A stretch of 64,000 nt of DNA from Squalus acanthias (lineage: Eukaryota). The translations under genes and the position numbers were made by a program. The notes under the pieces were generated by a model. The model made no database searches. It had not been told where the DNA came from and was given only the letters and a program-made list of their open reading frames with translations. Positions 7,456 to 58,800 of this stretch are shown one piece after another (position 1 is the stretch's first letter; the number at the start of each line of letters is the position of its first letter). Location of the stretch: NCBI GenBank assembly GCA_030390025.1, contig CM059430.1, positions 74,214,001 to 74,278,000 on the forward strand, written 5' to 3'.

Positions 7456-7629
7456 TCATCTCAACCAAATTATTCTGATTTGCATAATTGTTGTTTCTAC
7501 GTGTGAACTTATTTGTACCTCTGTATATATTGTACTCTCTTCGTGTTGTTTAGGTTTTGCAGTTTTCTTGTAACCGATCAGATCCAGATCAGCGTACGTC
7601 AGCTTATCGTCAGCTGCCCCTCCTTCTTT
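7456..7629 (-). CDS. Gene A terminal cytoplasmic exon with ITIM (LTYADL) and ITSM (TIYTEV)
   Basis: actttctag|KEGGAADDKLTYADLDLIGYKKTAKPKQHEESTIYTEVQISSHVETTIMQIRIIWLR*. Phase 0 matches the preceding exon. ITIM 7585-7602, ITSM 7516-7533. Confidence 0.85.
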   Translation of the reverse strand, partial: KEGGAADDKLTYADLDLIGYKKTAKPKQHEESTIYTEVQISSHVETTIMQIRIIWLR

Positions 7630-7731
7630 CTAGAAAGTCAACGTTTAGCATTCATTGAGTTACTTTTCCTGGAGTTGCAAAAGTCACGAAGCATTTACAT
7701 ATAATAGACAATTGAAGTAGCATAGTGTCAG

Positions 7732-8280
7732 TGGCTTGAATTTTAAAACTGCAGAGCATTAATTTAATTTACAATTTCTTTCATCAATCAACAACTCACT
7801 AGGGAACAATATCGAAACTTCCATGGATTAGGAAAAGCTAAGACTTTAGTAAACTAACGAATCTTAAATTTTAACCTTTTGAAAGTTAGTGCAAATTTTT
7901 TAAAGAATAAAAAGTGAAATATCAGTTTTTAGTTTTTCTTTCTGTCTCTTGTATCTCTCTCACATCACCATCTTTTTCACTCTCTTTATTTCGCTTTCTG
8001 TACATGATTTTACACTGAATTAAATCTAATTCTTACTTCCTGGTTTATACTTCCTAGTTTAAAGACTGTTTCTGAGAAAGGATTCTTCAAACTGATTGGT
8101 TGAAGAGCCACGCTGTTGTATGCTCAGGTCGCACACGACAGAGATCCGAGGCGCCATGTTGGATCAGACCTCGAATTACAGCAAGTTACTGTTCAAAAGA
8201 ACGCAAAAAGTCTGTGGGTAGCTATCAGAGTATTGAACGGTGAGTGCCTTTCCTCCACCGCTGACCGAATGATCCGGGCC
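7732..8280. mobile_element. Degenerate nonautonomous TIR element (Harbinger-like)
   Basis: Termini ggcttgaattt.. and ..atccgggcc with an AT-rich core. Similar end motif to the other MITEs. Confidence 0.4.
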
Positions 8281-9049
8281 GTTGAACTTCTGAAGGAATG
8301 AGTCTCCACCCTTGTAGAAGTAAATGTTCAATACCAGAGAGGTTGTTTGGCAATGAATCACGTCGTGAAAAATTCACTTACTCCTGAATACAACAGCGCT
8401 AACATTTTCTGTTCTGTTTCGTGGCTAACTAGTGGGTTTTAATGCAACTTCACACTTTGATTTCAATGCCGAATGTATCGGTGAGATACAAGATCAGGGA
8501 AATTCGTGTTTAACTGTGCATGTGCGAACTCCAGAATTTGCTGTCAGATTTACTCCATATTAAAGGTGAGCACTGATAATTTCACCGTTATTCGTAACAC
8601 AAAATCCTCGTTCTTAATTTGCCACTCCAAAGCCTCCTTATAGTCTATGGGCAGCGCTATTCCTTCCCTGCTGAAACAAAAATCCGGAAAAATAAGTCAA
8701 TTGGAGTGAAGAATCAATCTTACGTCGATAATCACGGAAATAAATATGGCCCCCAACAAAATAGGAAGGTGATTGCGTAGATAGGCAGCAACAAGCTAAT
8801 CGTTGAGTCAGCGAATTGTGGATGGGCAGAGGAATATGTAAATGCATTTGCTTAGAGGCAACGAGTTACTGTGTATGCATCAAAGTGCTCCATAGGAAAT
8901 TACTTAATTCTATAACATAAATGCTGCTTTTATTTAGGCAAATGTGGAATCTAATTTGTGCAGCGCATGGTCGCGCAAATAGCAATGAAATAAGTAACAT
9001 GTGTTTTTGCTTTCGGCTAAAGAACCAATGATGGCTGCAACACATGAGC

Positions 9050-11560
9050 ACAGGTACATAGGGCCATAGGATCAGGAGTAGGCCATTTAGCCCCTCGAGC
9101 CTGTGCCGCCATTCAGTGAAATATTGGTTGATCAGCGACCTAACTCCATATACCCGCCTTTTCCTGAAGAACTCCCCTGCTCTTTGTGAAATCTTGCCGT
9201 GGGATCTTTCATGTGCAGCACGGAATCAAGTCATTCGGCTCAACTGATCGAAGTCAGCTTATATGCTCTACAGGAGTCTCCTCCCACCCTACATCATCGA
9301 ACCCTATCAGCATATTTATCTATTACGGTCCCCCGTATGTGCTTATCTATCGTCCCCTTTAGTGCATCTATTCTATTTGCCTCAACTACTCCTTGTGGTA
9401 ACACATTCCACATTTTTACCACTCTTTGGATAAAGAAGTTTCTTCTAAATTTGCTGTTGGATTGTTTAGTGAATATCTTATATTTATGATCCAAAGCTTT
9501 GGACTCCCCACAAGTGGAAACATATTCTCTACGTCGAACTTAGCAAACCATTTCAATGGCCCAGAAATTAAACATGGATGGTTCCCACGGGGGTAAGGAT
9601 TCCCCGCGATATCGCACTCCGCGCCTACCTTTTTGCTCCGGGCCCACACGAACTTTAATTTTTAAGCCTCTCCCTGTTGCAACCGTGCAGTGTATGCGTA
9701 TCCCAGAGGCGCAATTAGTTCGTGCGAGCTCTGGGATCACGTGATTCAGTTAGAGCCAATGGCAGCACACCATCTTTCATTCATAGTTTTGACGGCAAGA
9801 ACTGTCACAGCTATGAATACTACAAATCCCCAAAAGAACAGCTAAACCTCAATTAAATTAAAAAAGTCATCACGTTAATAAAATAAGTATAGTTAAATAA
9901 ATTAATCACTGTAAACAAAAATTTGAATATTTGAAAAATTTTAAAATCTTTTTAAAAGTTATAAAAATAAACTTACTTTTCTTTAAAGTCTCTAAAAAAG
10001 ATAAACCTGTTGAATTTTTTTTTAAATAACACTTAATTAACTACTTACATTGTTAAAAGGGGGTCCTACGCCTGCTTTCTTTATGTGTAAAACCTTCACC
10101 ACTAACCTGCGCGTTCAAAGCTTAAAAAAAACTAAGTGCACTGCGTGCGCACAACCTGTAGCACGCACGTGGTTCACTTAGGAACCGCCCCCTTTGCAAT
10201 TCACGAAGTGCCGGTTTCCCGCGCATACGCAGTGCATGCAGGAAACCCGGCAATTCTGGATCTAATACGCTAGATTACACAGTAAGTACTCTTGCGTATT
10301 AGGTTTAATTTTCCCTCAGCCTTATTTCTTCTGGAGGAAAGCGCTCCAGCCTATTCGGCCTTTCCTGATAAGTGTATCCTCTCAATTCTGGTACCATTCG
10401 TGTGAATCATTTTTTTCACTTTCACCAGTGCCTCTATATTATTTTTATAATATGGAGACCAGAACTGTGCCCAGTACTGCAACTGTGATCTAACCAAGGT
10501 TCGATACAAGTTTAACATAACTTCACTGCTTTTGAGTTCTATTCTCTAGTAAAGAATCCCAATCTTGGTTTGTTTTCATATGGCCTGATTATTATGTATC
10601 GCTACTTTTAGTGATTTGTGCATTGTTATCCCCAGATTACTTGACCCCTCTACTCCATTCAGACTCTTATTATCCTAGCTGTATGTGGAATACCTATTGT
10701 TCCCAACAAAATGTACCACCTCACACTTATCTAAATTGAATTTCATCTGAAAATTACATGCCTATTCTGTAAGCTTCTTAATATCTTCCTGTATTTTGTC
10801 ATATTCTTCCTCTGTATGAACTGCACCTTCCAATGTCGTGTCGCCCGCAAATTTAAAATTACACTTATGATTTCGGAGTCAAAATTATTAATGTAAATAG
10901 TGAACAACATTTGTCCCAGCAGCAATCCCTGTGGAACACCACTTCCCACCATTTGCAAGTCTGAGTAGCTACTATTAAACCCTACTCTCTGCTTTCTGTT
11001 TTGTAGCCAGCTTGCTATCGATTGTGCTGCCTGTCCTCTGACTCAACTTGCTCTTATCTTAGTCATGAGTTTACGATGCGGCACCATATCGAAGGCCTTT
11101 TGAAAATCCAAATATATTGTATCTACTGCATTACACTTGTCTACTCTTCCTGTTACTGCTTCAAATATTCAATAAGTTTCAACATGCAGAATCCTCCCAT
11201 TTGAACTCTACTCTATTATATTTTAGGTTTCGATATGTTTATCTATGATAGCTTTGAAAAAATATGCTGCTCTCTTTCCTACCACTGGCGTTAAGCTAAC
11301 TGGTCTATAATTCACGGGACTTATTATATTTCCATGATTTAGTATAGGAATAACATTAGCTCTCCACCAGTCGCCTGGCAGTATTCCCTGTTCCAATGCA
11401 TTGTTATATATAATTAATAGCACACCTGCTATATTTTCCCCAACTTATTATAATATGCGTGGATGCAATCCATCTGGACCAGGATTTATATCCTCTCTTA
11501 AGTTTGATTAGTTTATCAATTACCCCCCTTTCTATCTTAAATATCTTTGTATCATTTTTG
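9050..11560 (-). mobile_element. CR1 LINE fragment (split by a MITE)
   Basis: RRNFFIQRVV, SGVPQG, NYRPVSLT motifs; CR1 3' tail at ~9055-9130. Confidence 0.88.
9558..10312. mobile_element. MITE inserted in a CR1
   Basis: Starts ggcccagaaatt; same family as 50049-50802; interrupts the CR1 at 9050-11560. Confidence 0.8.
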
Positions 11561-12236
11561 TATTTGATACAATATGCCCAACTCTCCTCGATCTTTTACG
11601 GCTGTCCATTGGCCCCTAAACCTGAATGTATCTCCGAACATAAAAGTGGCCCCACTATTATTAAGACTTATGCAATATTTTCATGCAATTGCTCTTGCTC
11701 AGAGTTTCTCTTAATATTGCGATCAAATTTTTAGGCACGCCAGGAAAAATATCATTTGTTATGGTGTTTCATCATAATATTATACCATTTTTCCAAATTA
11801 TCCTCACTGAGACATGCACCTTGTGTTCTGTTTCTATTCCTGCATTTATATGGTACAGGTATAAATTACGTTAAAAATGAAGTGCAGGTGCTTAGCCATG
11901 TTGCCTAATATTAATGGCAAATGTTTGGAACATTAATTCGCATATTGAAGAAGGAGTATAAGACGTGAGATCGGTGATGTCCGTGTGCCCCGATAGTTTA
12001 GGCTGCTGTAGTCCCATTTTACGGTCTTCAATTTTCTAATGAGATTGGCATTACATTTGATCGTAAAAATAACGGCGGAACGGGCCAGGGAATGGATCCA
12101 TTTTCAGGTCTATCTTCCGTGTTGCGCATTTGGAAGGAAATTTCTGGCCATCAGCTCATATAATGTGTAAAGATTTTATAATATAGGAGTATGGATGGGA
12201 AATTGCTAACTGTCACGGTGCTATAAACAATTTATG

Positions 12237-13294
12237 GCCCTGATTTTGCTCTTAAAAAAAATGGTGATGCTATGAGCACACAGCGCTATTAAAGAGTAAG
12301 AGCAACTATCGGCCTCCGGTTAATCAGAAAGTTGCTGTCCGAGTTGTCCTGCGTTGAGAGACGCTGTGTTATATCTCGCCGAAAGACTCATGGGAGGACA
12401 CTAAGTTGGGGTATTTACGCCAGAAAAAAGTTCTGGCTTACCCATTCCAAGCGTAAGTGTAACGAAGCGATCTGGCGGCTTGTTCGCAACTGACCGCAAA
12501 ATCCGGGCCAATCGTTAGATTGCTGCATGTTGGGCCGAAATTTGCGATCAGAGGCGTACCTCCAGAGTACTCTTCCAACCCGAAAAAATAAGCATTAACC
12601 TGCTGGCTCCCGGGCTTCGGAGTCTTCGGGTCCACACGCATGTGTAAAGGCCCACGAATCCCAGGGACGCAGGCGGTTTGGAAGCATCCATGGAATCACG
12701 AGTGCCAAGTCAACCAATTAGAAAGAGGGATTCCTCATAAGCTTATGGGGACTGCATTTACGAACGCAATCCGCAAAAGCTTATGAGAAATCACAAAATA
12801 AAAAAATAATTAACACAACTCTAATAAAAATAAATATTCCCTTGTTCAAAATTAATTAAAAGTCCCTTTAATTAAGAATTTAAAATGAACATTTAATTTC
12901 ATGAAAAATAATTGAATAATTGTAATACGGGCCAAAATATACATAAAGTAATATTAAATATTTAGTATTTTTGAATGATGTTTAAAATGTTAATTTAACT
13001 TTTATTTCAATCCTTACGCGGGTAAAAGGAAGCCTTACCCATGCTTTTATCAGGCATAAGGGTATCGTGGGCATTTACTGGGCCGTAGTTGGGCAGATAG
13101 CCCAAATCTGCGCCAGCAAGTGTTTTTGGGGCACATGTGGACGTTTCGTCAAGGTGAAACTTGATAGATAGCAAGTTCTGGGTTATCATGCATGCGCAGT
13201 GCATGCGGAAACCGGGAAATCGCGGGGCCATTCTGAGGGCTTAAGCTGGCATATGCTGTGCGTACGCCGTCATTGGCCCCGTAAAATCTGGGCC
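12237..13294. mobile_element. Two adjacent TIR elements (12237-12510 and 12532-13294)
   Basis: ggccctgattttgc..gcaaaatccgggcc and gggccgaaatttgc..aaaatctgggcc. The second is flanked by gtt/gtt (possible 3-bp TSD). Confidence 0.7.
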
Positions 13295-13606
13295 GTTATA
13301 TGAAATGAAAAAGCTTCTTGGTCTATTCTTTACCTGCACTTTCCTAAATCCTATGCATCCAGAAGCGAGGAGGACTGCTTAGATGGACATGCACCAGATC
13401 ACAATATACAATGCACACAAAGGACGGGTCTCATTGACAGGGAGAATTCGTGAAATTCTTATATAAATAGTTATTGATTCAGAAGTCCAAGGGAATGCAG
13501 CGCTCGCTTAGAGGAGAGACCTATGACCTTGGGCTGAGCATATATCTAATGCTAACCCAATTTTTGCAAGAAAAAAAGTCAAAGGCGATCAAATTTTACC
13601 TAAAAT

Positions 13607-14840
13607 TACATAGGTTCACAAAGGATATACAGTACAGAAACAGGCTATTCGGCACAACCAGTCCATGCCGGCGTTTATGCTCCACTCGAGTCTCCACCCG
13701 TCTTTCCTCATCTAAATCTATCAGCATAACCCTCTATTCCCTTCTCCCTCATATGCCAATCCAGCCTCCCCTTAAATGCATCTAAACTTGTCGATTCAAC
13801 TACTCCATGTGGTAGCGACTTCTATATTCTCACCGCTCTCTGTGTAAAGCAACTGATTCTGAATTCCCTATTTGATTTCTTCGTGAATACCTTATATTAA
13901 TAGCCCCTAGTCTTGCTCTTTCCCACAAGGTAAAACACTCTCTCTGTATCTACTCTATCAAAACATTTCATAATGTTAAATATCTCTATTAGGTCACCCT
14001 TCATTCTTCCCATTTCAAGCGAAAAGAGACCTAGCCTGTTCATCCTTTCCTGATATGTATACACCCGTCTTTCTGGAATCATCCTTGTAAATCATGTTTG
14101 CACACTCTCCAGTGCGTCTATATTTTTTTCGTAATATGTCGATCAGAATTTAGCGCAGTGTTCGAATTGTGTTCTAACCAACGTTCAATGCAAGTTTAGC
14201 ATAATGTCTGTAGTTTTCAATTCAATCCCTCTAGAAATAAAGCCTAGTGTTTGGTTTGCTTTCTTATGGCCTTGTTAATCTGTGTCGCTACTTTCATCGA
14301 TTTGTGCATTTTTGCTCATGGATCCCTTTACTCATCTACCCCAATTAGATTCGTGTTTTCCAAGTAATATGTGACCTGCCTAAGTTTCTTACCAAAATGT
14401 CATACCTCACAATTATCTCTGTTGAATTTAATTTGACAATTATATGCGCATTCATCAAGTTTATTAATATATTCGTGTAATTTGTTGCAGTCCTTATCAG
14501 TATTGACTATCTCCTCCCAGCCCCTCCAACCCCACTCCCCCGCCCCCCACAATTTGGTGCCATCTGCAAATTTAAAATTGTCTTTTTGATTCCAAAATCT
14601 AAACCGTTAATATAAATTGTGAACAACAGTGGTCCCAGCACTTATCCTTGTGGAACACCACGCCCCACATTCTGCCACGCTGAATAGCTACCATTTACGC
14701 CTACTCAATGCTTTAATTCTCGAAGCCAGCTAGTTAACCATTCTGCTAATTGTCCCATGACTCCACATTATCTGACCTTATTCGTTAGTCTATAATGAAT
14801 TACTTGTCGAAGGCTTTTTGAAAATCTAGTTAAATTACAC
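13607..14840 (-). mobile_element. CR1 LINE fragment
   Basis: LGLFSLE..MKGDLIEIF motif and CR1 tail. Confidence 0.85.
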
Positions 14841-15729
14841 TTATAATTTAATCGATATTTTTGCAAGTCTTGTGATCCTATTGGAGGACCAGGATTAATA
14901 ATCCTTATCAGATTAGTTCAAATGATAGTTTGCAAATTTGAAGTCAGTTTTAAAAATCTGGAAATATAATAGTTAGTTTCATTAGCAGTGTCCATTCACC
15001 TTTTGGATTAACTTAAAATTCCAGCTGGTTCAATAATATCCTTAAGGGAATCTGTACTCTTGCACCAAAACAACTTTTTGCAGCTTCCATGCATCACAGC
15101 TTGTTGGGTTATGAGCGAATACAACGTGTAAATATAATAGTGATTTGAGGTCTCCAGCTTTTAAAAAATAACCACAGACTGGTTGAACAGAACACACCAT
15201 TTGGGTTCGGTCACCTGGAGATGTCGGGTTAGGTCATCGGGCAACAACAACGGGGTGGATTTGCTTTGAGCTGCGTAGAACGGCAGGTTTCCAATAATGC
15301 AGTAAGTAGGCAGGTACAAATCTGCTATGGAGATCTGATAGTCCCTTGGTGCCATTTGATACACAAGGATTAATTTTGGACCTATAATTCGCCATGCTAT
15401 TTCCTTGTTAGCAAAAAGGAACGAGCAACGTTGTGCTACCTCTTCAATACTATAATTGGTACTTTCAAATATCAGGACATTTTTTATAAAATGGATTAAA
15501 ATGAATAATATAACTGTCTGTTAAAATCGGTCCGAGAGTTTCTTAACGCTTCGGTCAGTATTCTATATTTCTATCTTCATAGAATACGATGTATGTTTCA
15601 GAGAAGAGGTAAAGACCATGAATAACTCCAAGACGTAAGGATTCAAGTGGGAGGTTTATTTGAGCGCAAAATGTGAATAGTTTAGTTGAAATTTGAAAGA
15701 AAATAGAAGGAAAAATATGATGACCTTAC

Positions 15730-15773
15730 CTTATCTTCATGCTGAGTAGTATTTACTGAATTTCTCTTTGCAC
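15730..15773 (-). CDS. Gene A short cytoplasmic exon
   Basis: ttttatttcccaccag|GT GCA AAG..GAT AAG|gtaagg = GAKRNSVNTTQHEDK, phase 1 to 0, strong splice sites. Confidence 0.75.
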
Positions 15774-16320
15774 CTGGTGGGAAATAAAATTTAAATTAAT
15801 CACCAAGAACGGAGTAATATTTCCGTTGAACGTCAGAACAGCTAAATCAACTGTAATTAGGTTAGTTCACGGGTTGTAATAGGAGTACAAGTATCACGAT
15901 ATGTCTTCAAAATTTATAAAAAAGAGCGCTCTTCGATTGCAACTGTGTTCTATCCTTTGTGTTGAAGTTGTGCAAGCATCATTATACCCCCAAAAATGAC
16001 TGCTACAGATCAGCATCTACATCAAAATGGTTTAGGAATTCCCAGCTACGAGACTGATAAAGTCACGTCATGATCTAACCTTGAGTTCAAGCAAACAGAT
16101 ACGGAGATGTATGTTTGAATAATTTTTCCTGTAACCCGTCAGTAATATTTTACCATTCAGGTGCTCCGCTTGTAATGATGACTGTAATCTGCCCTTTCGT
16201 TCTCTACCTGCCAGTAAAGTATTTTTAACTGTATCAATTATAACGTTAATTTCTAATTTTAAAAGTTTTAAAATCTGCCGTTAGAAAGACTATGATCAAC
16301 AAAGGCGAAACGGTTCGTAG

Positions 16321-16434
16321 CTTTAGATGTAACTAACTGGTGTCGTTTCACAATCGAAATGATCATCAACAGAATTACCACCGCACCCACGGCACATCCA
16401 GCGACCAGAGGAATAGGGATCGTGGACTCAAAAT
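16321..16434 (-). CDS. Gene A transmembrane exon
   Basis: ctcatag|AT TTT.. = DFESTIPIPLVAGCAVGAVVILLMIISIVKRHQLVTSK. Uncharged TM followed by KR. 114 nt like the gene B TM exon, but the donor reads G|CTACGA (GT lost). Confidence 0.82.
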
Positions 16435-17422
16435 CTATGAGATTGATAGCAAATCAAAATCAGCAACTGAGGAATGTAAAAAGCATATTCACACGTTTCA
16501 ATGTCACAAGCATATTTTCCAAATATACTCCTTTGAGAATACAATAATACAGTACAATAAGTCTCAGCACGTCCATTTTGTTATTTCCATATTCAGCTGA
16601 TTTGTATGAAATCAGGAACGGAGAGTTTGAAACACCTCGTAGTTTGGATAATCAGCAGCAATGCGAAATATTGAGAAACACACATCAAATGGTTCCCTTC
16701 TAATTGATTGGAATAAAGGGCAATGGGAAAAGATTCAATCTGTTCACGATGTGTGGGGAAAAACTCATTTTGGATGTTTTATCTGATCAATATATAGGAA
16801 AAACGCTTAAATACATTATAATGGAACGTGTTCACAAATTTATTGGAGGTGCCCTTCGGAGCAAATCAAAACGAAGACTAGCTCCTTCTTTCCATATGAA
16901 GGAGGCAAGCAATTCCTATTTGGTACAGTGTCGAGGGAGTCGCACTATGCACCTGATGATGCCGGGACTGGTATTGGATTGCTTCATGGCAGCGGGAGTG
17001 TGTAAATGCTAAATTCCCCTACTCCATCCCTCCAGTCCTCACTAACTTTACCCGTCCTACAATGCATTGTGCGATTTCTGGCAACAACCCTCACAGTGCC
17101 TTCTCTGCGTGAATTTCCAATGCTTTGGCTGTTAAGCTGATTTATGATAACTATGTTGAGTTCTGCTGTCCAATGTCAGCGAGCTTGCTTATGTCTAATT
17201 TAATTCTGATAAGTTCCTAATGCTCAACAGAAAGGCAACCTTCACCCAATCAATGGAAGCTGGAGTAAAACCAGACTTCGGAGCTGACTGAATGATATGC
17301 AAACAACTGCAGTATACACTTCCCGAATTTCCTTGCATTAACCCATTATCTGCGATGGAATGTCGATTATATCGAGGAAAACACAGAGATCGAGAAATAT
17401 GTTACGTATGCAACAACATTAC

Positions 17423-47445: not shown

Positions 47446-47448
47446 GGT

Positions 47449-48156: not shown

Positions 48157-48314
48157 TTACATGTCCATGAGTTCGAACACCCTGTTCTGGTAATTCTGCC
48201 ACACCTGTCCGTACACTACGTTCTCCTCGTGGCGTTTAGTTTTGGGACCTTTCTTCCGACCGACGAAATCGACAGCACAGTAGGTCTGTCTTTCTTCAGC
48301 GTCCATTTGCAGAC
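48157..48314 (-). CDS. Gene B tyrosine-motif exon 2 (QTYCAV, ITIM VVYGQV), terminal
   Basis: atacag|GLQMDAEERQTYCAVDFVGRKKGPKTKRHEENVVYGQVWQNYQNRVFELMDM*, with AATAAA 4 nt after the stop (48148-48153). Same Y12/Y35 spacing. Confidence 0.75.
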
Positions 48315-49593
48315 CTGTATTATTTTTCAGATATAGTGTTATATTCTGCCTTCACAACTATGCAGATTTCTACATGAAACAGACTAGAATAGACTTGCTT
48401 ACGGAAAGACACGATCGATGTGTGACTGCCAACCAGGGGTCACTGGAAATAACAATCGGGACAGATGTAAAACGGGCTACCAATTCACTAGCACGCATTT
48501 TACACTATCGCACTATCACTATCGAAATCTATCCCATTGAGCCCAACATGTGCGTTGTTAAACAGACAATGTTGAGGTCATGCGCTGCAGTGGTTTCTTA
48601 TAAGATGTGATAATTATAATTGTAGGTGTGTTGAACCTGTGCTCGACACCTAGAACTGGGGTTCCTGAAAAGTTTGGAGATGTTTTCCTTCTTTGGGGCC
48701 GATAGTAACTATTTGAAATCGTCGTTAATGAGGCTGTAATGGTCATTAAATTGAGTTGGCAGATTAACGTTCCGTTAGGGCCGACACTGCAAACCGTCGC
48801 TTTTACAGATCCCTACCGCTGGCTAGCAGAACCACCGGACTTTTCAGATGATAGACCCGTTTTGTGATACAAATCTTAACTTCAATAATTTTATAGTTTA
48901 TCTTAAGCAGAGCCATGGGTAAAATGTAAGTCGCACTGTGAAAACTCTATCCTGTTGTTTCCTGAATCTATATCAATTTTAGATTAATTAATGGGAGGGG
49001 GAATCCATAAGTAAGTAGTGGGTGAGCGGTACATTTCGGGTGTTGTTATCCGACTGAAATATAGACTGGGAACAAACAGTATAACAGGAAATTGGGGAAG
49101 AATTATATAGAAACCAGTTGTTGCTTTAGAGTTGGCATCAGCTCCCGAAGGCGCTGAAGTTCATTGCTGGAAGATACAAGAAACAATGCTGAGGCATCTG
49201 ACTTTTCGCACTATCTATGAAGCATGAGGGGGGAGGGGCGGAATTCGTCTCGGATGATAAGGCATAGCAGGCGATACTGCACCGGAAGCCTATTATTCAC
49301 TCCAACAATTTTTATTTCCGTTGGCAAGGGAATTGAAAATTCGCTGAATTTGATATCTGACTTCTGCTGCCTCGTTACGCCCGTTCTGTGACGCAGCCCT
49401 AAACGAATTTCAGCCGCTAAGACACAAAACAAGTAAGAATAAGTTGGGCTTGAATGAGGTCTTATGTACGATGGTAGCAGGGTGGTACAACTGAGATAAC
49501 AATGAATCTATATTTCTGTGTACGTGTCTGCAACTAATACACCAAATATACATAGTGGAAATTATATTGACTTACAAACACAAAAATTAGTGT

Positions 49594-49600
<7 letters not shown>

Positions 49601-49628
<28 letters not shown>

Positions 49629-49668
49629 GACATAGTGCTGCATATATATATATGTATATATATATATA
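49601..49668. repeat. (AT)n microsatellite, two blocks
   Basis: Direct inspection. Confidence 0.95.
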
Positions 49669-49725
49669 TGATATATACTTGTTTATATTAAATAACGTTA
49701 CTTGTATACATTGAATTATTAGTAC

Positions 49726-49836
49726 CTCTGCGTGCACGTTATTCTTTTTCATCTGCTTGGGGTTTGAATGCTTCTTGGGTTCAGTAAAATTCAAAGTTGC
49801 GTAAGTGAGCTGTTCATTTGTTGTGTCTTCGATAGC
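49726..49836 (-). CDS. Gene B tyrosine-motif exon 1 (ITIM LTYATL; second motif degenerate NVHAEV)
   Basis: atttacag|AIEDTTNEQLTYATLNFTEPKKHSNPKQMKKNNVHAE. Tyr at codon 12 and His at codon 35 align exactly with gene A Y12/Y35. The 3' end is uncertain (read-through runs into the AT microsatellite). Confidence 0.8.
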
Positions 49837-50048
49837 CTGTAAATCTATTTGCACAACATGCATTATATCATTGAACAGATTGAGATCGTTTGTAGATTTC
49901 AAATGCAATCGTAATATTTTGCCAGAGTTCCATTTCCTAAAATCCAATACTCATTGATTTATTTTTTTGCTTCTAAATTGAGTTTATATATATTTTCTGT
50001 TTTAAAATGTTAGCACTGCCACAAGGCACAATTATATTGAATGCTATT

Positions 50049-50802
50049 GGCCCAGAAATTGCAGTGTGAGGGTTCGTGCGAGGGTAAGCCCTTCCCGCGA
50101 TGTCTCACTGCGCCTTGGCTTTTTCAGTCCCAGCTCGCTGGAACTTCATGTCCCAGCCATCAGCTGCGAGTGCATCGTGATTCCACAGTGCGGAGTTAGT
50201 TCGAGTGCACTGTGGGATCACGTGACTGAGTTACAGCCAATGGCAGCACACCAAGCTCTCATTCATAGAATTCACAGCGGCCATTGAACTGCTGTGAAAA
50301 CTAGGAATACAACAAGCCCCCAAAAGAAGAGCTAAACCTCCATTAAATTAAAAAAAAAACCCATCACATTATTAAAATAAGTGTAATTAAATAAATTAAC
50401 CTTTTTAAACAAAAAAATAAATTTTTGAAAAAATTTTAAATCTTTTAAAATGTTATAAAAATAAACTTACCTGTCTTTAAAGTCGCTACTAAAGATTTAC
50501 CTGTAAAAAAAAATTCTAAATACTACTTAATTATGTACTTACCTGGTTAAAAGAGGCTCCTGCGCCTGCTTTTTACTTTTCCAGAATCTTCAATACTTAC
50601 CTGCGTGCGCAAGCGATGAAGTGCACTGCGTGCGCGCAGCCTGTAGCGCGCACGCGGTGCACTGAGGACCCGCCCCCTTTCACTTCCATCAATTGCCGGT
50701 TTTCAGTGCATGCGCAGTGCATGCTGAAAACCGGCAATTGAAGTCTGGCTGCGCGAGTGTACACTGTGCGTACTCTCGCGCAGCCGGATCAATTTCTGGG
50801 CC
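50049..50802. mobile_element. MITE copy in a gene B cytoplasmic intron
   Basis: 17-bp perfect inverted repeat tattggcccagaaattg / caatttctgggccaata. Confidence 0.85.
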
Positions 50803-50959
50803 AATATGTTAATGATCCCCACATGGAAAGTTTGTACTGAATATATAATAAATAATAAACAATAAACATGTCACCCTGCAGTCCCCTTATGCCATTGATT
50901 CTCTATTAACAGATCGTATTAAAACGCTTCCAGTTAGGTGCAGTATTCATATGCAATAC

Positions 50960-51036
50960 AGTAGAATCATCGCTCTTTTGGACTGCTTCATGCAGATTTA
51001 TTTTCTCTGCATCAGAGGAAGATTTTACGTCCTTAC
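50960..51036 (-). CDS. Gene B candidate short cytoplasmic exon
   Basis: tttttgtttaag|GKDVKSSSDAEKINLHEAVQKSDDST|gtattg, phase 1 to 0 as in gene A. The donor is uncertain. Confidence 0.5.
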
Positions 51037-51139
51037 CTTAAACAAAAATAAATTGTACGATGTGTGATACCATACCGTACACTATCTGATTAAAATGCGG
51101 GCCTGTTCGTTTTCCAGACCTTCCTCCTCCTGAAACTTC

Positions 51140-52344
51140 AGCTCATCCAAAATGCTGCTGCGCATAACCAAACCTGCTCAAGTTCTCACTCACGCCACAC
51201 CAAGTGTTTATTTTGGCTCTTTGTCCGCCAATACTTCAGATTTTAAACTGCGTCCTTGTGTTGAAATTTAACATTGGCCTTATCTCTGTAAACTTCTTCA
51301 ACCCTACTACATTCTAAGAACTCTGTTTTTGCCCAATTCTTGCTGCTTATGGATCCCTGTCGCTACAATTCAAAATTGGCAACCGTGCTTTCAGCCATAT
51401 GGGCCATCATCTCTAGAATTCCAAAAGTTAAACTATTCGCGAATACCCTATGCGCCTTTAAAACTCTTCCCGCGCCATTTTGACCAAGTTTTGGTCAGCC
51501 CTATAACTTTCGCCCTCTTTGTCTTCTGTCGATTTTTGTCTGTTTCGGCTTCAATGAAGTGGCATGGGATGTTTTTGTTCACGGCGCTATTTAGACGCGT
51601 ATTTCTGTCGATCTTTCCTTTAACATGGCGGCAGAGCACAGCAACCGCTGTTAAAATTCCAGCCATGCATGTTCATACTGACCGTCGGAAAGACCACGGG
51701 GTGAATTTTCTGGATGGAGAACCACGTAAAGGAGCAGTTACGCTATTGGACCGAGCTTTCTATCTAGATTTGACTATTCCAACGCACTCATGGCCGGCCT
51801 TCCCCGATCTGCCCTGGTAAACTTTAAGTCATGCAAAAATCTGCTGCCCATGTCCTAACTTGCACTAAGTCCAGTTCACCCATTACTCCTGTGCTCGCTA
51901 ACCAACATTGACTCCGGGTTAAGCGATGCCTCGGTTTTAAACTTCTCATCATTGTTTTACAAATCCCTCCCTAGCCTTGCCACTCCCTATCTCTGTAAAG
52001 TCCTGCAGCCCAACAACCCTTTGAGATATCTGTTCCCCTACAGTTTTGGCCTCTTCGAGCATCCCCGATTTTAATTGATCTACAGTTGGCAGCCGTGTTT
52101 TCAGCTGCCAAGGCCTTAAGCTCTTGCATTCCCTCCCTACATCTCTCCGCCTTTCTGCCTCTCTTTACTCCTTTAAGACAATCCTTAATACCTATCTTTT
52201 TGACCAAGCTTTTGGTCATCTGCCCTAATATTTGCTTAACTGGTCCTGTGTCTAATTTTCTCTGTTAATGCTCCTGTGAAGCGCCTTGGGACATTTTACT
52301 GCTTTAAAGGCGCTATATCACATATGAATTGTTGTTGTTGTTGT
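51140..52344 (+). mobile_element. Two L2-type LINE 3' fragments (51140-51600, 51830-52344)
   Basis: IQNAAA, ITPVLA..LRVKRCLGFKLL-like; ends aaggcgctat..(tgt)n. Confidence 0.75.
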
Positions 52345-53187
52345 AGCGCAGGAGACTGAGGACCCAGGAGAAATCCTGTGCCTGTGTTTCTGGGGTTTCC
52401 ATAAGTTTCCCACCTCAGTTCCACGTGAGAATGGTGATATCCAACAGGGTATCTGAGCCTACCTATTTATATATCACACCAGCAACTATTACTCACAGGG
52501 CTACATCGGTATCCTGGCAAAATTTTGGCGAATAATTGGGACAAGCCCTGTGGAGCATTACTTATTACTGAAAACTATTGCTTATATCTTTCATTCCTTT
52601 ATTATCCTTACATTTATTTTGACGTCAGAGTGAGATGGTTCACAGTCCATATTTATAGCAGTTATGCAACCCTTGTTATGCATCAGATTTTTAAGTTGCA
52701 GCTCAAGTAACAATGAGAGATGGGGAATACCCCTGCGGAAATTCGACAACTATTGCTCTGTAATATCGTCCGGGTTTTCCGGCTCTCCAGCTTTAAGTTT
52801 GCGATGAAACCGGCTGCATATCTAGAGAACTATATAAACTAACATACACAATATTTGTTGAGACAGTTATTTCCTTTCTCTGGGAGTTCAGTCAGTTTCT
52901 GCTGACATTAGCGTGAACGACTGATGGCTGCGCATGAAAGTTTATTGACCACCTGTCCAATGCGAGCATCATTAAAATGGTGTGGTTCTTGTATCTTCTT
53001 TTCCAGAAGTGATCGAAAGGCTGCAGGATTTCCCTGGTTTATTGAAGAGCCGCTAATTGCTCTTCTTTCTGATCTAATCTCTTTACTTCCGCGGGTACAA
53101 TTATTATTTCCTCCATCTTTCTAAAGTCAGAATAATGCTTTGAAATTATCAACTCATCAGTAAATTTGAGTAAAGCTGAATTTTTAC

Positions 53188-53301
53188 CTTTGAGTCTATG
53201 TAATTTCAGTAGTTTCAAAATGGTGATCACCAGTAGTAGAATTAAAAATCCAACTCCTAAACAGGGATAAAGGAACACGAGTGGAAAACCATGATACGTA
53301 T
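53188..53301 (-). CDS. Gene B transmembrane exon
   Basis: gtcttgcag|DTYHGFPLVFLYPCLGVGFLILLLVITILKLLKLHRLK G|gtaaaa, 114 nt, phase 1/1. Confidence 0.88.
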
Positions 53302-56013
53302 CTGCAAGACAAACAGAACTTCTACCTAAAAATCTAAGTGATTGATAAAAAAAAGGTTATATTACTTTTACAAGCCTGGCGCTGTGAATGATCAGACTCT
53401 GAATTCAAAAGAAATGTAAGGTTAATAAAGACATATAGAAATAAGCTCTGAAATTCTGCGGAGGTCTTCTCGGGGTCTCACAATAATTTTGTGCGCGGCT
53501 GTCGCTCTTTCCCCCCACCCCCACCCCGCACTTCGACGAGAGATTAGCAGCAAACCCAGATAAATAGTTTAAATGTCTCGCTTTATTTATGTACATTATT
53601 TCTCTGAGGTTTTCGCTCGACTCGCATTTCAATTCTGACGCCAGATCAGAGATACCTCATGAAACCTCCTTATCTGTGACATTTGTCTTGGTATTGACGT
53701 TTCTCTCTCTGCCGCCGCTCTTCTACTTCTCTGTCCTTCTCTTTCCCCTTTAGGTCTCTGCCTCTAAGTTAGTTCCGTTTCTATTTCAATCCTCTTCTGC
53801 TTCATTCTCTGAATCTATGCTCTATCCTCGGATGTTGGAGTTGGTGAGTGGCACAATGTGCTGTGAAAGAGGAATGGGTAACTCATGCACCGGGCTGCAT
53901 TTTGGGTGGGACTACAGTGAAACTCTGGGCATCAGTGACTGATTTCAACTCCTCTCTCCCATTATTTATGTTTCATCGATCGTCTTGCTGCTATGCCTCT
54001 CCCATCCCATTACCTTTCCACTGCGACCTTCCCTTCTGATCACTCCTCACTCTGATTTTGCTCTGTGGCTTCCTTAGTGAACGATCCACTCATACCCTAA
54101 ATACTTCTGCAGACTTGATTCATTGTCGCTCACCTTAACTTAAATCCTCTCTGCACTTCGTCACGTCTGCACTTCCATTCACTCCTCCTTGGTATTTGAT
54201 GAATCGTACAATCATCGAATCTTACAGCACAGAAGAGGGCTGTTCTGCCTATTGTGTCTGCCGCCTATTTAAAAGAGCTATCTCGTTAATCCTACTCCTC
54301 CGCTGAGAGGTCTATGACACCTTTACCATTTGCCACTTCATGCCTAGTACTAATGCTCAGCCTTCGTAATCCTTTCCTTGGAAGAGCCTGCATTTAGTTA
54401 AACTTGCTCTTTTGAAAGAAATTAAACTCGAATGAAGAATAATCTCTTGTTCTCTGCCTTTCCCCCTATCTGTATCCCTGAGGTAATTTTAACTTTTAGT
54501 TGTGAGCACATAATAGGTGAAAGCGAATTGGAAGATCGTTTTGCACCCTGGTCAGTTTTCTGTGAACATTTGGCCTAGCCATACAAGTTAAAATTACTTC
54601 CTCTGCCTCTGATCCTCATGTGTTTGCATTAGAATGTTAGTCTGGCAGCTTTAAAGAATTGAAAATTCACCTTATTAAATGTCACGAAAACATAAACCAC
54701 AGGCGAGACAATTAGATTGCTTAAAATTAAACATTATTTTGTTGAAAATATTCACCCGAAGAAAGAAATGAGCTCTCCCTTTATACCCTCCCTTTCTCTC
54801 GCTTTTTGGCGTGCCTTGGTTCTCGCTATCTCTGACATAAGGATGATTCTATGTTTCTCTGTTGCTCAGTTTAATAAACTTTCTGTAGTTTATGTAACAC
54901 AAAACATAAGATAATAACAACGTGTGATCGTAATGCTGTTCTTTTGTCAAATCCACTCGGTCACACAGACAAACGCACAAAAATGTTTTCTTTAAAAACT
55001 GAATATAAACTCTTCTGGATGCAATAAATATTCTAACATGTGTCCTTTTGTGCATAAATCAACAGCTGTCTAAATGCTACTATTACACTTAACATGCTCA
55101 AACTGCATCACTTAAATTTAGCTCATAATGTGAAAAAGCTGCGCAAAAATATTAAGTCCAAGTCTATACTTTGGAGGCAATCAAATAATAATTAATTGAA
55201 TAAAATGAAAGACGGAAAGAGAATTAATTCGATACATGCTATTTCTTAATAGATGGCACTTTGTGTTCCCTATGTTGTATAATCTCTTATCGTTCATATT
55301 AGATATTTCCATTGCTGCACAAATAAAAATCTTCAAAATAACGAATATTAGATAAACAAATAGAACTGTTACCAGCCTCATGGAACGATGCTCGAGTTCT
55401 GAAAGATTTATCCATTAATCTCAAATTCCTGAAAGGCTCGGTCATTTGATGCAGCACCCGCCTAAGTTCTGAATACATACTGGTGGAATTTTCGCGATAG
55501 GATTTTTTTCCGACTCGACTTTTAACTTTAGCGGATGATCCGCCAACCTCGGACAATCTGCCTAAATCCCCGTGCAAACAGCCGGTAGTAGGGCCCAAAT
55601 TTCACCGGGGTGTGGGGGGACAGGGGGAGGGTGGTCTTTGGCGAGAGTTTTGAAGAATCCGCCGGAGATTAGGGACCAGGACGTCGCAGGTTGATGCATT
55701 TCCGGTACTTGCTCATTATCAATTGGGACGGAAATTTACTTATATCCGGGCTGGAAAAGGGACAAAAATGTAGAATTCGTACTTCTGATAAATGTACAAA
55801 TGTACCTGCTAAGGAAGGGACCAGATCGTTTTAACTGTAATTGGAATGATTTCCAGGAATTGCTTAGCCTCGCACATAAACAATAGAAGCAAAGGAAGCG
55901 CAAAGTGGCGCCCGCAGTCCATGATGATAAATCTCAGTTACTATTAAGACAGTTTTCTACTTATATTGAAATTATAGACGTCGTTTTATTTGAGAAACAT
56001 GCACGCCACTTAC

Positions 56014-56318
56014 CTGAAAGGTGAATAACGTGATATACACGTGCACCAGTGTGAAGAGAGACGTGTGATATCTGACAGGTATAATTCGTTCCGCTCTGCA
56101 AAGAAACTGTTTCATGGAGATAACTGGAAACTTCATACAGTCCCGCTGTGTTCTGTTTTTTATTTAGTTCATACCGCTCTGAATTTCGGATCTATTTTTA
56201 AACCAAGTGATATTCAGCCTTTCCGGGAAAAACGCAGCCGTTTTACACTCAAGAGTCAAAGAAGTCGATGACACAGTTCTAAGCACAGAGGAGAAGATCT
56301 GTAAAGGCGTCGGAGGAA
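56014..56318 (-). pseudogene. Gene B C1-set exon with 1-nt deletion (305 nt)
   Basis: tttccacag|PPTPLQIF..LTLECKTAAFFPERLNITWFKNRSEIQSG(-1 at ~56171)ELNKKQNTAGLYEVSSYL..NYTCQISHVSL..|gtaagt. Clearly homologous to the 306-nt gene A C1 exon. Not shown in the ORF track. Confidence 0.92.
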
Positions 56319-57840
56319 CTGTGGAAAAATTGTTTGACATTTTATCTTCAGTTCATTTGATAACCAGTGTGGACTGAAATCCAAAAAACAATAAGGAGGT
56401 CAATAATCAGCTGAAATAGAACACGTCCAGTTTCACATTAACACGGTAATTATATAAAGTTGGCGCTTATATTTTCAGTATGTTAACTACGCAAATATAA
56501 TTAATGTCAAGATAAAATGTACAGGCTCATGATATTTTATAAATATGATTGTCAGTTAAAGAAATCTTCTGCTGTATAGTTAACTCCGTTGTCAAAAGTT
56601 TCATAGAGCTCATCTCCATTTGACTTATGGTTAAAATCGGTTTATTTTGGCGGCAGTTTAAAAATGTTCTCAGTCAACTATTGATGTTTCTTTACCCGAA
56701 ATAAAATATTGCATAATATAAAGACATGGTCCAATGATAAAAGCTCTTCTGCACATTTGATTTCCACCTCTCGAATAAGAATCTCCCTGTTTTCCAAATG
56801 TGCCCAGTAACTGATCAAGCCGATGTGTCAAATTTTCGTAAGGGAAAATGGAACAAAAATTCTGCGCAAGTCCCATCAGGTTAGCGCTATTACTTCAAAT
56901 GGGAAACTTGCAGAAACCTCAGAGGCCTATATAACCGTCCGTTTTTATTCATTTATCACGTTGAAATGGAGCTTTTGACGGTGTCCCGGTGGCAGCCCCA
57001 CTTTACTTCGTGACCGTAGAGATCTTATCGCCAGAGAATGTTACATGGATTTTTTTGGCTTTGCTGAATTTTGGTCTGAAACGGGACTGATGCATTCCTA
57101 ATTTCCTCCTTCTCTCCACATCTTAACATCATTTAACTTTAATCAATTTTCAGAAGTGTTTCAAATCTTGTAATCCAATTAGCATTGAGCAGTAACTGTG
57201 AGCAAGTATTCGCTATTCGAAAATAATCTTTACGTGCAACATTATTCTTCCAATTCCCGCCTTTTCATTTTCATCAGAAAAAAGTCAATATGTCCCCTAT
57301 ATGTTGAGTAGCAGAAATTTACAGCACGAAAAAAAAATACGGACTTCACATTCCCGACGAGTTTTCCCTTCCACCGTAACCTCGGCTGAAAATAATTTCA
57401 AATCCTTGAAAAACCACGCTTTTAGCACTTGCGCTGTTTGTCCGGAGTTACCAGAATCTCCCTTTGAATATCCTGGGCATCGAATATCCTTGTGTCCTTG
57501 CACGTGATGGTGTTACTACGCGCCTGCTGTCCTTGTCCTTCAAGTTGGTAGCGGTCGCGGGTTTGGGAGTTGCTGCCGCAGAAGCATTGACAGTTGCAAC
57601 AGTGCATCTTGTAGATGATACACACTGCAGCCACGGTGCGCCGGTGGTGGATGGAGTGAATGTTTAAGGTGGTGGATTGGGTGCCAATCAAGCGGGCTGA
57701 TTTGTCCTGGATGCTGTCGAACATCTTGAGTGTTGTTGTAGTTGCACTCATCCAGGCATTTGGAGACAATCCCATCACAATACTGACCTGTGCCTTGTAG
57801 ATGGTGGAAATGCTTTTCGGAGTCCACAAGTCTGTGCTAT

Positions 57841-58142
57841 NNNNNNNNNNNNNNNNNNNNNNNNNNNNNNNNNNNNNNNNNNNNNNNNNNNNNNNNNNNN
57901 NNNNNNNNNNNNNNNNNNNNNNNNNNNNNNNNNNNNNNNNNNNNNNNNNNNNNNNNNNNNNNNNNNNNNNNNNNNNNNNNNNNNNNNNNNNNNNNNNNNN
58001 NNNNNNNNNNNNNNNNNNNNNNNNNNNNNNNNNNNNNNNNNNNNNNNNNNNNNNNNNNNNNNNNNNNNNNNNNNNNNNNNNNNNNNNNNNNNNNNNNNNN
58101 NNNNNNNNNNNNNNNNNNNNNNNNNNNNNNNNNNNNNNNNNN
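57841..58142. other. Assembly gap (302 N)
   Basis: Run of N in the gene B V-C1 intron. Confidence 1.
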
Positions 58143-58196
58143 TTTCATTATTTCTGAGTTTTATCGACATTTAGATTAGTATGCAACGCCACTTAC

Positions 58197-58517
58197 GAAA
58201 TACAATTAGATCTGTGCCATTTCCATCAACAAATTCGGATGTCCCAACTTGCACTCTGCTTTTATAGACTCCAGAGTCGTGGAATGTCACATTCTGCAGA
58301 TGAAAGGAAACTGTTCCATTCTGTAGAGCTTCAAATTTTCTACGGTTGTCAGGCGTTACTGTTATCAATTTTTTGTCTACGACCTTGCCCCAGAAAACAT
58401 TTATTTCCTCGTCCTTCTTTAATCCAGATACCGTGGCAAGTAGGGTAACGTTTTCACCCCTTTTCACCGCTACAGATTCGGGGAACTGAGTGCATTTCAG
58501 GGAAACATCTTCGGCAG
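58197..58517 (-). CDS. Gene B V-set exon with joined J motif, lacking both canonical Cys
   Basis: ttccgacag|CT GCC.. = AEDVSLKCTQFPESVAVKRGENVTLLATV..INVFWGK..PDNRRKF..SFHLQNVTFHDSGVYKSRV..FVDGNGTDLIVF|gtaagt. 321 nt open, phase 1/1. Confidence 0.92.
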
Positions 58518-58734
58518 CTGTCGGAAATAGATATCATAGCAGAATATTTACTTGATAAACAGAAGAATATGAAGAGTTAAAATGCAGAACAAAGCAGTGA
58601 CGAGCACAATACGGCAATGTAAAGCACAGCGTTTAATACGTGACCAATAAAACAGGACAAAGAGAAATATAAAACTTGATCAATTACCAATATTTTGCTA
58701 CTGCAGAACCTGTTATATGAAATCGGTCACATAC

Positions 58735-58800
58735 CTGTGCAGAAAATCCACAGCATGGCACAATACTGAAAAGCAACGTTCGAAACAAACTTAAACCCAT
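58735..58800 (-). CDS. Gene B leader exon
   Basis: ATG 58800, MGLSLFRTLLFSIVPCCGFSAQ|gtatgt, hydrophobic signal-like. Ends phase 0, whereas the V exon starts phase 1. Confidence 0.65.

Follow-up and report, generated by a model that had tools for sequence, protein, structure and literature searches.

Within a window of 64,000 nucleotides (nt) of the Squalus acanthias genome (assembly GCA_030390025.1, contig CM059430.1, positions 74,214,001 to 74,278,000 of the forward strand), we identified what is probably part of a tandem array of receptor genes belonging to a cartilaginous-fish (chondrichthyan) family that does not rearrange. In this family, a V domain with an already joined J-like strand (VJ) is followed by one C1-set domain, a transmembrane (TM) segment and a cytoplasmic tail with tyrosine motifs. 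In the reading that we favor, gene A (7261-24535) is a likely pseudogene, a third V exon is dead, and gene B (48157-58800) may work. An earlier note made from the letters of this DNA had described the exons as a cluster of inhibitory receptors specific to one lineage, with tails like that of PD-1; its observations are confirmed in part and its interpretation is supported in part.

All exons that had been listed exist, and a pattern scan together with self-tblastn placed every family exon of the window on the minus strand, including two exons beyond that listing. Searches were run exon by exon rather than on one joined model. Both genes keep the order leader, V, C1, TM and tandem tail exons, with frame defects present, and each gene has a tandem pair of tail exons with tyrosine motifs. 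Pfam assigned V exon B to V-set (36.0 bits, cut-off 26) and C1 exon A to C1-set (34.7 bits, cut-off 21), and the two pieces of C1 exon B scored 24.7 and 18.8 bits against the same C1-set cut-off; the pieces of V exon A matched V-set at 13.7 and 15.1 bits, both under the cut-off when taken singly. A check for C2-set or I-set identity yielded only scores under the cut-offs, 16.5 bits for C2-set_3 on C1 exon A (cut-off 27) and 12.2 bits for I-set on one piece of C1 exon B (cut-off 23.7), so that the domains stand as V-set and C1-set.

Three sequence features are given as C1-set hallmarks in the available text of PMC2785349: a spacing of 13 residues that separates the B-strand Cys from the C-strand Trp, a BC loop with (F/Y)(F/Y/H)P, and xVxH following the F-strand Cys. 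Measured against that account, both C1 exons carry these hallmarks, as C-RSAAFYPKDFNLT-W, FYP and KVHH in gene A, where the F-strand Cys itself is Phe, and as C-KTAAFFPERLNIT-W, FFP and QISH in gene B, with Ile replacing Val. The TM segments of both genes are uncharged, as had been stated. The statement that each gene has one C1-set domain also holds: each has a single C1 exon, and a tblastn search using 120-odd relatives detected no second C1 exon for either gene in the window. Likewise, tblastn with all collected proteins of at most 520 amino acids (aa) found no family exon in the window beyond those reported here; extra matches came from a retroelement piece fused into one gene model (P0084; P numbers denote collected relatives). 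No other recognizable host gene was seen in the window.

J-like motifs lie inside the V exons on the minus strand, GKGT at 23854-23865 in gene A, GNGT at 58213-58224 in gene B and GCGT at 35499-35510 in the third V, verifying the claim that the J-segment GxGT is already joined. In genes A and B, a splice donor directly follows the J strand (GKGT..VVYG before gtaagt and GNGT..IVF before gtaagt, respectively). The gross V-J-C1 shape, together with the database name "immunoglobulin lambda-1 light chain-like" given to some members, might suggest rearranging antigen-receptor genes (immunoglobulin [Ig] light chain or T-cell receptor [TCR]) or germline-joined Ig clusters. We regard this as highly improbable, since the J motif sits inside the V exon with the donor directly after it, TM and tyrosine-motif exons come after the C1 exon, and the C1 domains group as a separate clade; for the window copies, exon structure refutes it. 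The J-joined V exon, single C1-set domain, uncharged TM and tyrosine-motif tails thus uphold the description of these genes as non-rearranging receptors.

The window exons belong to a large family of cartilaginous fishes. A phmmer search of 1.84 billion representative proteins with C1 exon A returned 286 proteins at E≤1e-3, 97 at E≤1e-10 and 3 at E≤1e-30, and in family members of 250-410 aa the C1 domain occupies about residues 123-225, behind the V domain. The layout of members comprises a leader, a V domain ending in ..NGTGSxLxV, one C1 domain opening with PPTPLKI.., a TM segment and tails such as ..VTYAAL.., an N and ..TEYAEI. Members come from the chimaera Callorhinchus, the sharks Heterodontus, Heptranchias, Chiloscyllium, Rhincodon, Scyliorhinus and Mustelus, and the batoids Amblyraja, Leucoraja, Mobula and Hypanus. 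As the proposed setting required, cartilaginous fishes supply all of the nearest relatives; the family is not specific to one lineage, as it occurs in a chimaera, sharks, skates and rays.

Genome pipelines have already annotated the family, though under misleading names. Database entries include [quoted passage not shown] (that is, SIRP-alpha-like), "signal-regulatory protein beta-1 isoform 3-like" and "uncharacterized protein," and also MHC class II beta-like, Ig lambda-1 light chain-like, tapasin-related and NCR3LG1-like. We found no paper on a SIRP-like family of cartilaginous fishes in the literature searched, which left out most subscription journals and supplements, and provisionally we consider the family to be absent from the literature as a described system. 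An alignment of 22 members (A1) has invariant V cysteines, C1 cysteines, tryptophans and His of xVxH, and the J-motif glycines G113 and G115 are at least 90% conserved. A word-indexed protein search with V exon B alone gave 11 candidates, none at E≤0.01; this blank says little, since the search covers only proteins of 64-203 aa.

We placed the C1 exons of the window in a maximum-likelihood tree of 67 C1 domains, which draws on 29 of the 113 family proteins. Three multi-C1 proteins entered this tree with selected domains and all other proteins with every domain spanning at least 65 profile positions; the tree contains neither mammalian SIRP nor Ig or TCR C domains of known name. The family forms one C1 clade (support 100/98) comprising 30 family C1 domains and both window exons. 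C1 exon A (win_C1_A) shares a starred set of four rows with P0004, P0011 and P0006 (100/93), in which the fork pairing it with P0004 is weak (99/38), and C1 exon B (win_C1_B) pairs with P0131 (100/97), which is Heterodontus XP_067905014. By tblastn, the closest relatives of gene A are Heterodontus XP_067905931 and XP_067905013 (57% identity in C1 and 52% in V), with a Scyliorhinus torazame protein closest for TM and tail, and the closest relative of gene B is XP_067905014. Judged by these matches and tree positions, genes A and B are orthologs of annotated Heterodontus genes; to the question of whether they are simple orthologs of a characterized shark family, the answer is that the orthology holds and that the Heterodontus genes are uncharacterized. 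Because the A-like XP_067905013 and the B-like XP_067905014 have consecutive accessions on one Heterodontus contig, the neighborhood of A and B is probably old.

Both inhibitory-type and activating-type forms appear among the relatives. A classification of TM segments and tails across the 113 family proteins, which include isoforms and so are not independent rows, placed 38 proteins with an uncharged TM, a tail longer than 60 aa and at least one motif resembling an ITIM (immunoreceptor tyrosine-based inhibitory motif), 15 that have a tail of at most 60 aa and a TM containing Arg or Lys, 22 uncharged without a motif, and 38 without a clear TM or truncated. An Arg near the outer end of the TM, a short tail and a TM that often ends in ..IIVDHV characterize P0006, P0014, P0023, P0065, P0084, P0087, P0137, P0171 and P0176, which by sequence have the look of activating partners pairing with an acidic adaptor. 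Because such relatives combine an Arg or Lys TM with a short tail, the family looks like a paired inhibitory and activating set. In the window copies, candidate ITIMs follow the uncharged TM, LTYADL in gene A and LTYATL and VVYGQV in gene B.

We propose a working model of the receptor whose plan would consist of a leader, a V domain in which the J motif is joined in the germline, a single C1-set domain, a TM segment and tandem two-tyrosine tail units. By analogy with ITIM receptors such as SIRP-alpha, the V domain would bind a ligand. Src-family kinases could then phosphorylate the (I/V/L)xYxx(L/V) tyrosines, and phosphatases of the SHP-1/SHP-2 type could dock on the phosphotyrosines and damp cell activation, as for SIRP-alpha. 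The short-tailed relatives with Arg or Lys in the TM would form the activating side of the paired set. Gene B, if functional, would either rely on a V domain that lacks a disulfide or join its leader directly to C1, as in the Heterodontus gene model.

The tails also bear on the proposal that these receptors combine an ITIM with an ITSM (immunoreceptor tyrosine-based switch motif) in the manner of PD-1. The pair LTYADL and TIYTEV had been ascribed to both genes; both motifs do occur within open frame 7459-7629 of gene A, and gene B instead has LTYATL with NVHAEV and QTYCAV with VVYGQV. In gene A, a donor GT (7518-7517) directly follows ..TIYTE, and orthologs such as P0011 run on past TIYT into the next exon as ..TVYIETKHGSTDNKLTYATL; together, these indicate that the spliced motif is TIYTEN and that the V of TIYTEV is intron read-through. 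The ITSM consensus TxYxx(V/I) is thus absent from either predicted spliced product, as gene A yields TIYTE followed across the splice by N and gene B yields NVHAE without a tyrosine. According to the available text of PMC11599192, PD-1 is likewise a V-domain member of the Ig superfamily (IgSF) with an ITIM and then a TxYxx(V/I)-type motif. PD-1 differs in lacking a C1 domain and in having just one ITIM/ITSM pair, whereas the tails here are a tandem repeat from duplicated tail exons, with a tyrosine spacing of 23-14-23 and an alignment to a lungfish SIRP-alpha-like tail, which does not bear out the PD-1 arrangement. Among nine listed members this exact spacing occurs in two (P0055 and P0011), and the others vary by 1-2 residues or differ in tyrosine number.

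Among known systems, SIRP is a close match in layout. Both SIRP and the family have an N-terminal V domain with a J-like G-x-G-T strand (PMC11599192, in the part seen), then a C1-set domain (PMC2785349, likewise) and a single-pass TM, and the available portion of PMC11599192 counts SIRP among IgSF members with a joined VJ. The likeness extends to an inhibitory tail of four tyrosines in two repeated units, as both units of the P0055 tail align with the tail of lungfish SIRP-alpha-like P0121 (32% over 81 aa), and to short-tailed forms whose TM contains a basic residue, which recall the SIRP-alpha/SIRP-beta pairing. Differences include one C1 domain in most family members versus two in SIRP (V-C1-C1), a much larger family, and TxYxxT rather than TxYxx(V/I) as the second motif of the middle unit. 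The search for SIRP-alpha relatives with the family profile and P0121 recovered SIRP-like proteins of lungfish, a single turtle SIRP that lacks an ITIM tail, and B7-like proteins of amphibians. Since no mammalian SIRP-alpha was among the sequences found, the comparison of the tail with tetrapod SIRP-alpha relies on the lungfish protein.

A direct reading of this likeness would be that these are true SIRP genes, orthologous to the tetrapod SIRP cluster and with one C1 domain lost. In its favor, pipelines named many members SIRP-alpha-like, the top match of the intact member P0019 among solved structures is SIRP-gamma (E 2.4e-13), SIRP-alpha scoring nearly as well (3.7e-12), the family profile matches SIRP-alpha 2wng at 8.5e-33 across V and C1, and the four-tyrosine tail aligns with that of the lungfish protein. 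In addition, a clade uniting the family with SIRP is not rejected by the AU test (p 0.385), and skate P0012 has two C1 domains. These points are offset by the C1 tree, in which lungfish and turtle SIRP form a separate clade (96/83), the joining forks are weak (92/67, 90/72) and the family groups weakly (90/72) with multi-C1 Ig-like proteins, and by solved-structure scores of IgA, IgM, Ig light chains, B7-H6 and UrIg2 that about equal those of SIRP. The two C1 domains of P0012 are near-identical and point to a recent duplication. Moreover, ITIM tails are widespread among unrelated receptor families. We therefore consider direct SIRP orthology a possibility of clearly less than even weight; the family resembles SIRP in layout by these sequence comparisons.

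UrIg and UrIg2 offer a second comparison. The available text of PMC12227049 describes them as non-rearranging elasmobranch VJ-C1 genes with a single-exon VJ, a split leader and C1-set domains, all of which recur here. Among solved structures, UrIg2 (9dmx) ranked fourth against C1 exon A (E 1.5e-8) and second against the family profile. By that same account both UrIg and UrIg2 have many C domains, nine or more in UrIg2, in contrast to one C1 domain and a tyrosine-motif tail here, and neither ITIM nor ITSM occurs in the part of PMC12227049 that was available. The multi-C1 proteins lie outside the family clade in the C1 tree. NKp30 (NCR3) shares a non-rearranging VJ-type V domain and matched V exon B weakly (E 0.037-0.05). 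NCR3 is not known to have a C1 domain and signals via a charged TM. B7-H6 (V-C1) matched P0019 at 1e-12, and some family members were auto-named NCR3LG1-like. B7-H6 is not known to have a J-type strand or a tail of the family type, and the NKp30/B7-H6 scores are no better than those of Ig chains.

Taken with these comparisons, one tentative proposal is that the chondrichthyan V(J)-C1-TM family, with tails of the SIRP-alpha four-tyrosine type and Arg-TM partners, is the counterpart of SIRP, as sister or ancestor, and that the gene B lineage is a subtype that gave up its V domain; we lean away from this proposal more than toward it. In the available texts, the origins of SIRP are said to remain unknown (PMC9652883), a 2026 survey dates the SIRP family to Tetrapoda (PMC13262535), and SIRP-alpha is presented as long proposed to be a relative of the antigen-receptor precursor, with a VJ-type V joined to C1-set domains (PMC2785349). 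A large cartilaginous-fish family with SIRP-type ectodomain logic, tail layout and paired forms makes the question of SIRP origin testable, and it extends the short list of shark non-rearranging VJ-C1 genes (UrIg, UrIg2). If the proposal were true, the origin of SIRP-like paired receptors would move from tetrapods to the base of jawed vertebrates, and a living, expanded, non-rearranging lineage with V-J-C1 on a signaling tail would stand beside the antigen receptors.

Gene B is a window copy of doubtful status. Its leader exon (58735-58800, minus strand; donor GT 58734-58733) reads VSNVAFQYCAMLWIFC and is 75% identical to the P0131 leader (E 6e-5), with an in-frame ATG at 58756; the ATG at 58800 opens MGLSLF.. 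in a frame other than that of the conserved leader. The V exon (58197-58517, 321 nt) is open and has consensus splice sites and the GNGT motif, and it carries Ala and Ser at the two columns that hold Cys in 22 of 22 rows of A1, so that the canonical intradomain disulfide is missing. Of 65 family V regions, 62 show the pattern C..W..YxC, the remaining three being mis-modeled N-termini. Cysteines hidden in other frames of V exon B were sought, and none fit.

The C1 exon (56014-56318) spans 305 nt in the window and 306 nt in reads and is 63-66% identical to P0131 by tblastn. The TM exon (53188-53301, phase 1 to 1) is uncharged, and its DTYHGFPLVFLYPCLGVGFLILLLVITILKLLKLHRLK is 53% identical to P0131 over 36 aa. 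Tail exon 1 (49726-49844) carries LTYATL ... NVHAE up to the exon end and is 68% identical to P0131, and tail exon 2 (48157-48314) carries QTYCAV ... VVYGQV and a stop and is 56% identical. The His of NVHAE is shared with Heterodontus P0131 (..KKNVHTQ), which indicates that it is old and tolerated rather than recent decay. In the assembly, the reading frames of tail exons 1 and 2 disagree by 1 nt: 29 nt instead of 30 separate the acceptor of tail exon 2 from the Thr-Tyr codons. Gene B keeps three tail tyrosines, with LTYATL and VVYGQV of ITIM type.

The gene model of P0131 consists of leader, C1, TM and tail with the V domain absent. This model may represent a natural V-less subtype or a gene-model gap. 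In gene B, leader and C1 are in phase and would give ..FCT-V-PPTPLQIF, the same junction as ..FCR-V-PPTPLQIF of P0131, and skipping of the V exon would keep the frame because all introns are phase 1. Gene B may be functional and would then use either a disulfide-less V domain or leader-to-C1 splicing with the V exon skipped.

An assembly gap (N run, 57841-58142) lies in the V-to-C1 intron of gene B, 54 nt past the V exon donor. Because it falls between the last base of V exon B (58197) and the first base of C1 exon B (56318), it is intronic and no reading frame crosses it. The gap flank 57536-57840 is a very abundant repeat whose word depth in the DNA runs reaches 3.9 million, and this repeat probably caused the gap. 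The same repeat has a word depth of about 90,000 also in two runs that we guessed to be RNA, and it is probably transcribed; a copy 74.7% identical lies at 45286-45611.

Reads of four runs, taken as contigs, were placed on 53000-57840; X1 and X5 are DNA, and the other two are the small runs guessed to be RNA, none of the listed runs being recorded as RNA. Behind position 56169 in C1 exon B, both DNA runs carry one extra base at full depth (23 of 23 in X1 and 65.3 of 65.3 in X5), which restores the frame. Since X1 carries both window-like and X5-like haplotypes elsewhere in 53000-57840, the base missing from the window is an assembly error and no allele. The frameshift of C1 exon B had been a candidate proof of pseudogene status and was rejected on this ground. 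Between X1 and the window, these 4.8 kb contain seven full-depth substitutions and one single-base indel. Depth reaches 144 at 56155, about six times the value of about 23 nearby, on part of C1 exon B, and paralogs mapping there account for this rise. The indel error thus sits in a family exon where paralog sequence piles up.

Gene A carries frame changes as well as defects of substitution type. Its leader exon (24479-24535, minus strand; ATG 24535-24533, donor GT 24478-24477) reads MFMSGALWGLCFLGNFF; a frame change in a run of 7 T is required to reach ..YP as in P0004 and P0007 (..CFLGIMYP), and the donor is phase 1. The V exon (23832-24142) is 311 nt long, which is no multiple of 3, and matches P0007 at 52% over 102 aa (E 3e-29, tblastn). 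Compared with P0004 and P0007, it passes through three internal frame changes, as VAVGTS lies in the first frame, GKMTPG..WWREGTDT in the second, HLQEDSIKQFQVKKG in the third and GAYLHLL..GKGTRVKLVVYG in the second again. It keeps both canonical cysteines. The stops TAA 23976-23974 and TGA 23961-23959 lie within an out-of-frame stretch between two frame changes. Nonsense mutation of this exon was examined in all frames against orthologs and rejected, since the frame changes put the stretch out of frame and its apparently in-frame stops are not nonsense.

Further toward the 3′ end of gene A, the defects are of substitution type. The C1 exon (17423-17728, 306 nt; 57-59% identical to P0004, P0006 and P0007) reads YTFKVHH, with its second cysteine replaced by Phe (TTT 17486-17484) at a column that is Cys in 22 of 22 rows of A1. 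The TM exon (16321-16434) is uncharged, and its DFESTIPIPLVAGCAVGAVVILLMIISIVKRH.. aligns with P0004 and P0011. CT rather than GT follows the end of this exon, an end placed by orthology from protein alignment and not from ortholog DNA, and the one GT close by (16337-16336) has the wrong phase. A small cytoplasmic exon (15730-15773; AG acceptor, GTAAGG donor, phase 1 to 0), absent from the earlier list, encodes GAKRNSVNTTQHEDK, 50% identical to GGKRTSLNTSQHADR of P0004 (E 0.006). Tail exon 1 (7519-7629) contains LTYADL ... TIYTE. Tail exon 2 (7261-7389) contains LTYAAP ... LVHAAV and then a stop, and both of its motifs are degraded relative to the LTYATL or LTYLAL and the LIYSTV or LVYAAV of orthologs. 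Gene A keeps three tail tyrosines, of which only that of LTYADL lies in a good ITIM.

The four frame changes of gene A (one in the leader and three in the V exon) are thus accompanied by four substitution-type defects: C1 Cys to Phe, the CT at the TM donor, LTYAAP, and LVHAAV with Tyr to His. Because these four would remain even if some of the frame changes were errors, gene A is most likely a pseudogene, as judged from the assembled sequence. The earlier description of complete exon sets does not hold for the frames as assembled, which are broken by the 311-nt V exon A and the 1-nt shift of C1 exon B; C1 exon A and V exon B have also lost cysteines.

The third V (35490-36430, minus strand) is a paralog of V exon B, with 72% DNA identity to 58440-58651 over 217 nt. 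An inserted repeat of about 700 nt (about 35600-36282) splits it, and similar copies of this insert occur within the window, for example at 30803-31519 and 37260-37947. In alignment A2 with V exon B, the third V has 24-nt and 14-nt deletions and 1-nt gaps and has lost the donor GT and the first-cysteine region. No C1, TM or tail exon was detected downstream of it in the window by tblastn with relatives. As its sequence stands, the third V is a dead relic; a third V exon with GCGT had been correctly noted, and it proves to be broken by the repeat, two deletions and frameshifts. One V relic and one copy with many defects within the same window also agree with the birth-and-death evolution that had been postulated.

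Several observations weigh against our view of gene A as decayed and gene B as possibly working. The frame changes of gene A are seen in the assembly only, and two of the four lie in short base runs (T7 and GG) and a third beside a CC pair; since the sole frameshift compared with reads, that of gene B, proved to be an error, some of these may be assembly errors as well. The lost TM donor of gene A is placed by protein alignment alone. In the C1 tree, win_C1_A and win_C1_B have end branches (0.21 and 0.22) that do not exceed the branches of the orthologs in length (0.35 and 0.21), so that the C1 exons display no sign of long neutral decay. For gene B, it is the scaffold join spanning the gap, together with matching intron phases, that ties V exon B to C1 exon B, and the gene retains two frame problems (leader and tail exon 2) plus a V exon that resembles no intact relative. 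On the bin holding C1 exon B, the two small runs guessed to be RNA, as contigs, had depths of 1.09 and 0.55, a mere trace; they had no depth on the TM exon of gene B and no joints outside the repeat.

These observations feed two opposed alternatives. Under one, genes A and B are intact inhibitory receptors and every frame break is an assembly error, for example from paralog reads mis-mapped in polishing. The single read comparison that exposed an error, the base errors implied by seven substitutions in a sample holding a window-like haplotype, the paralog depth on C1 exon B, the location of several breaks at short T or G runs, the absence of stops in ortholog-guided frames and the normal C1 branch lengths would all fit. 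Set against this are one full-depth indel difference in 4.8 kb versus seven frame breaks in about 1.9 kb of exons, the four substitution-type defects of gene A, an extra A outside any run as one of its frame changes, and the loss of both cysteines from V exon B by substitution, which no alternative frame restores. We consider this alternative quite unlikely.

Under the other alternative, which we consider unlikely although less so, the whole cluster is dead and the open V and C1 exons of gene B are recent remains of a further pseudogene. This would account for a V exon lacking both cysteines that 62 of 65 family V regions possess, for the out-of-frame ATG 58800 and tail exon 2, for Gln at position -2 of the first motif of tail exon 2 and the tyrosine-less second motif of tail exon 1, for the lack of a clear RNA signal in the two small runs guessed to be RNA, and for a sister V that is a relic. 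However, C1 exon B is intact in two samples, the splice sites of the V, C1, TM and first tail exons of gene B are all canonical with matching phases, the His-for-Tyr change is common to the annotated Heterodontus ortholog, the branch length is normal and an in-frame ATG is available at 58756. The reading with a likely pseudogene A, a dead third V and a possibly functional gene B therefore remains the one that we prefer.

The window itself is worth less than the family. Its relic V, one decayed copy and one doubtful copy illustrate birth and death. It also demonstrates that family exons can bear assembly errors that mimic pseudogenes, and because of the base errors in 53000-57840, pseudogene calls for this family in the Squalus acanthias genome need to be checked against reads.

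Mobile elements occupy other parts of the window. An intact open reading frame (ORF) of 714 aa at 19415-21559 on the minus strand, inside the V-to-C1 intron of gene A, contains a reverse transcriptase (Pfam RVT_1, 34.7 bits); we take its C-terminus to resemble the GIY-YIG motif of Penelope-like elements, which Pfam did not report. Within 19109-22581, this ORF is flanked by direct repeats of 123 nt (19109-19231 and 22132-22254, 100% identical) and by an inverted repeat of 324 nt (98.5% identical), and the whole looks like a young retroelement. On the plus strand, an ORF at 46754-47251 matched the DDE_Tnp_4 transposase weakly (21.2 bits, under the cut-off of 24.8) and probably represents the remains of a DNA transposon.

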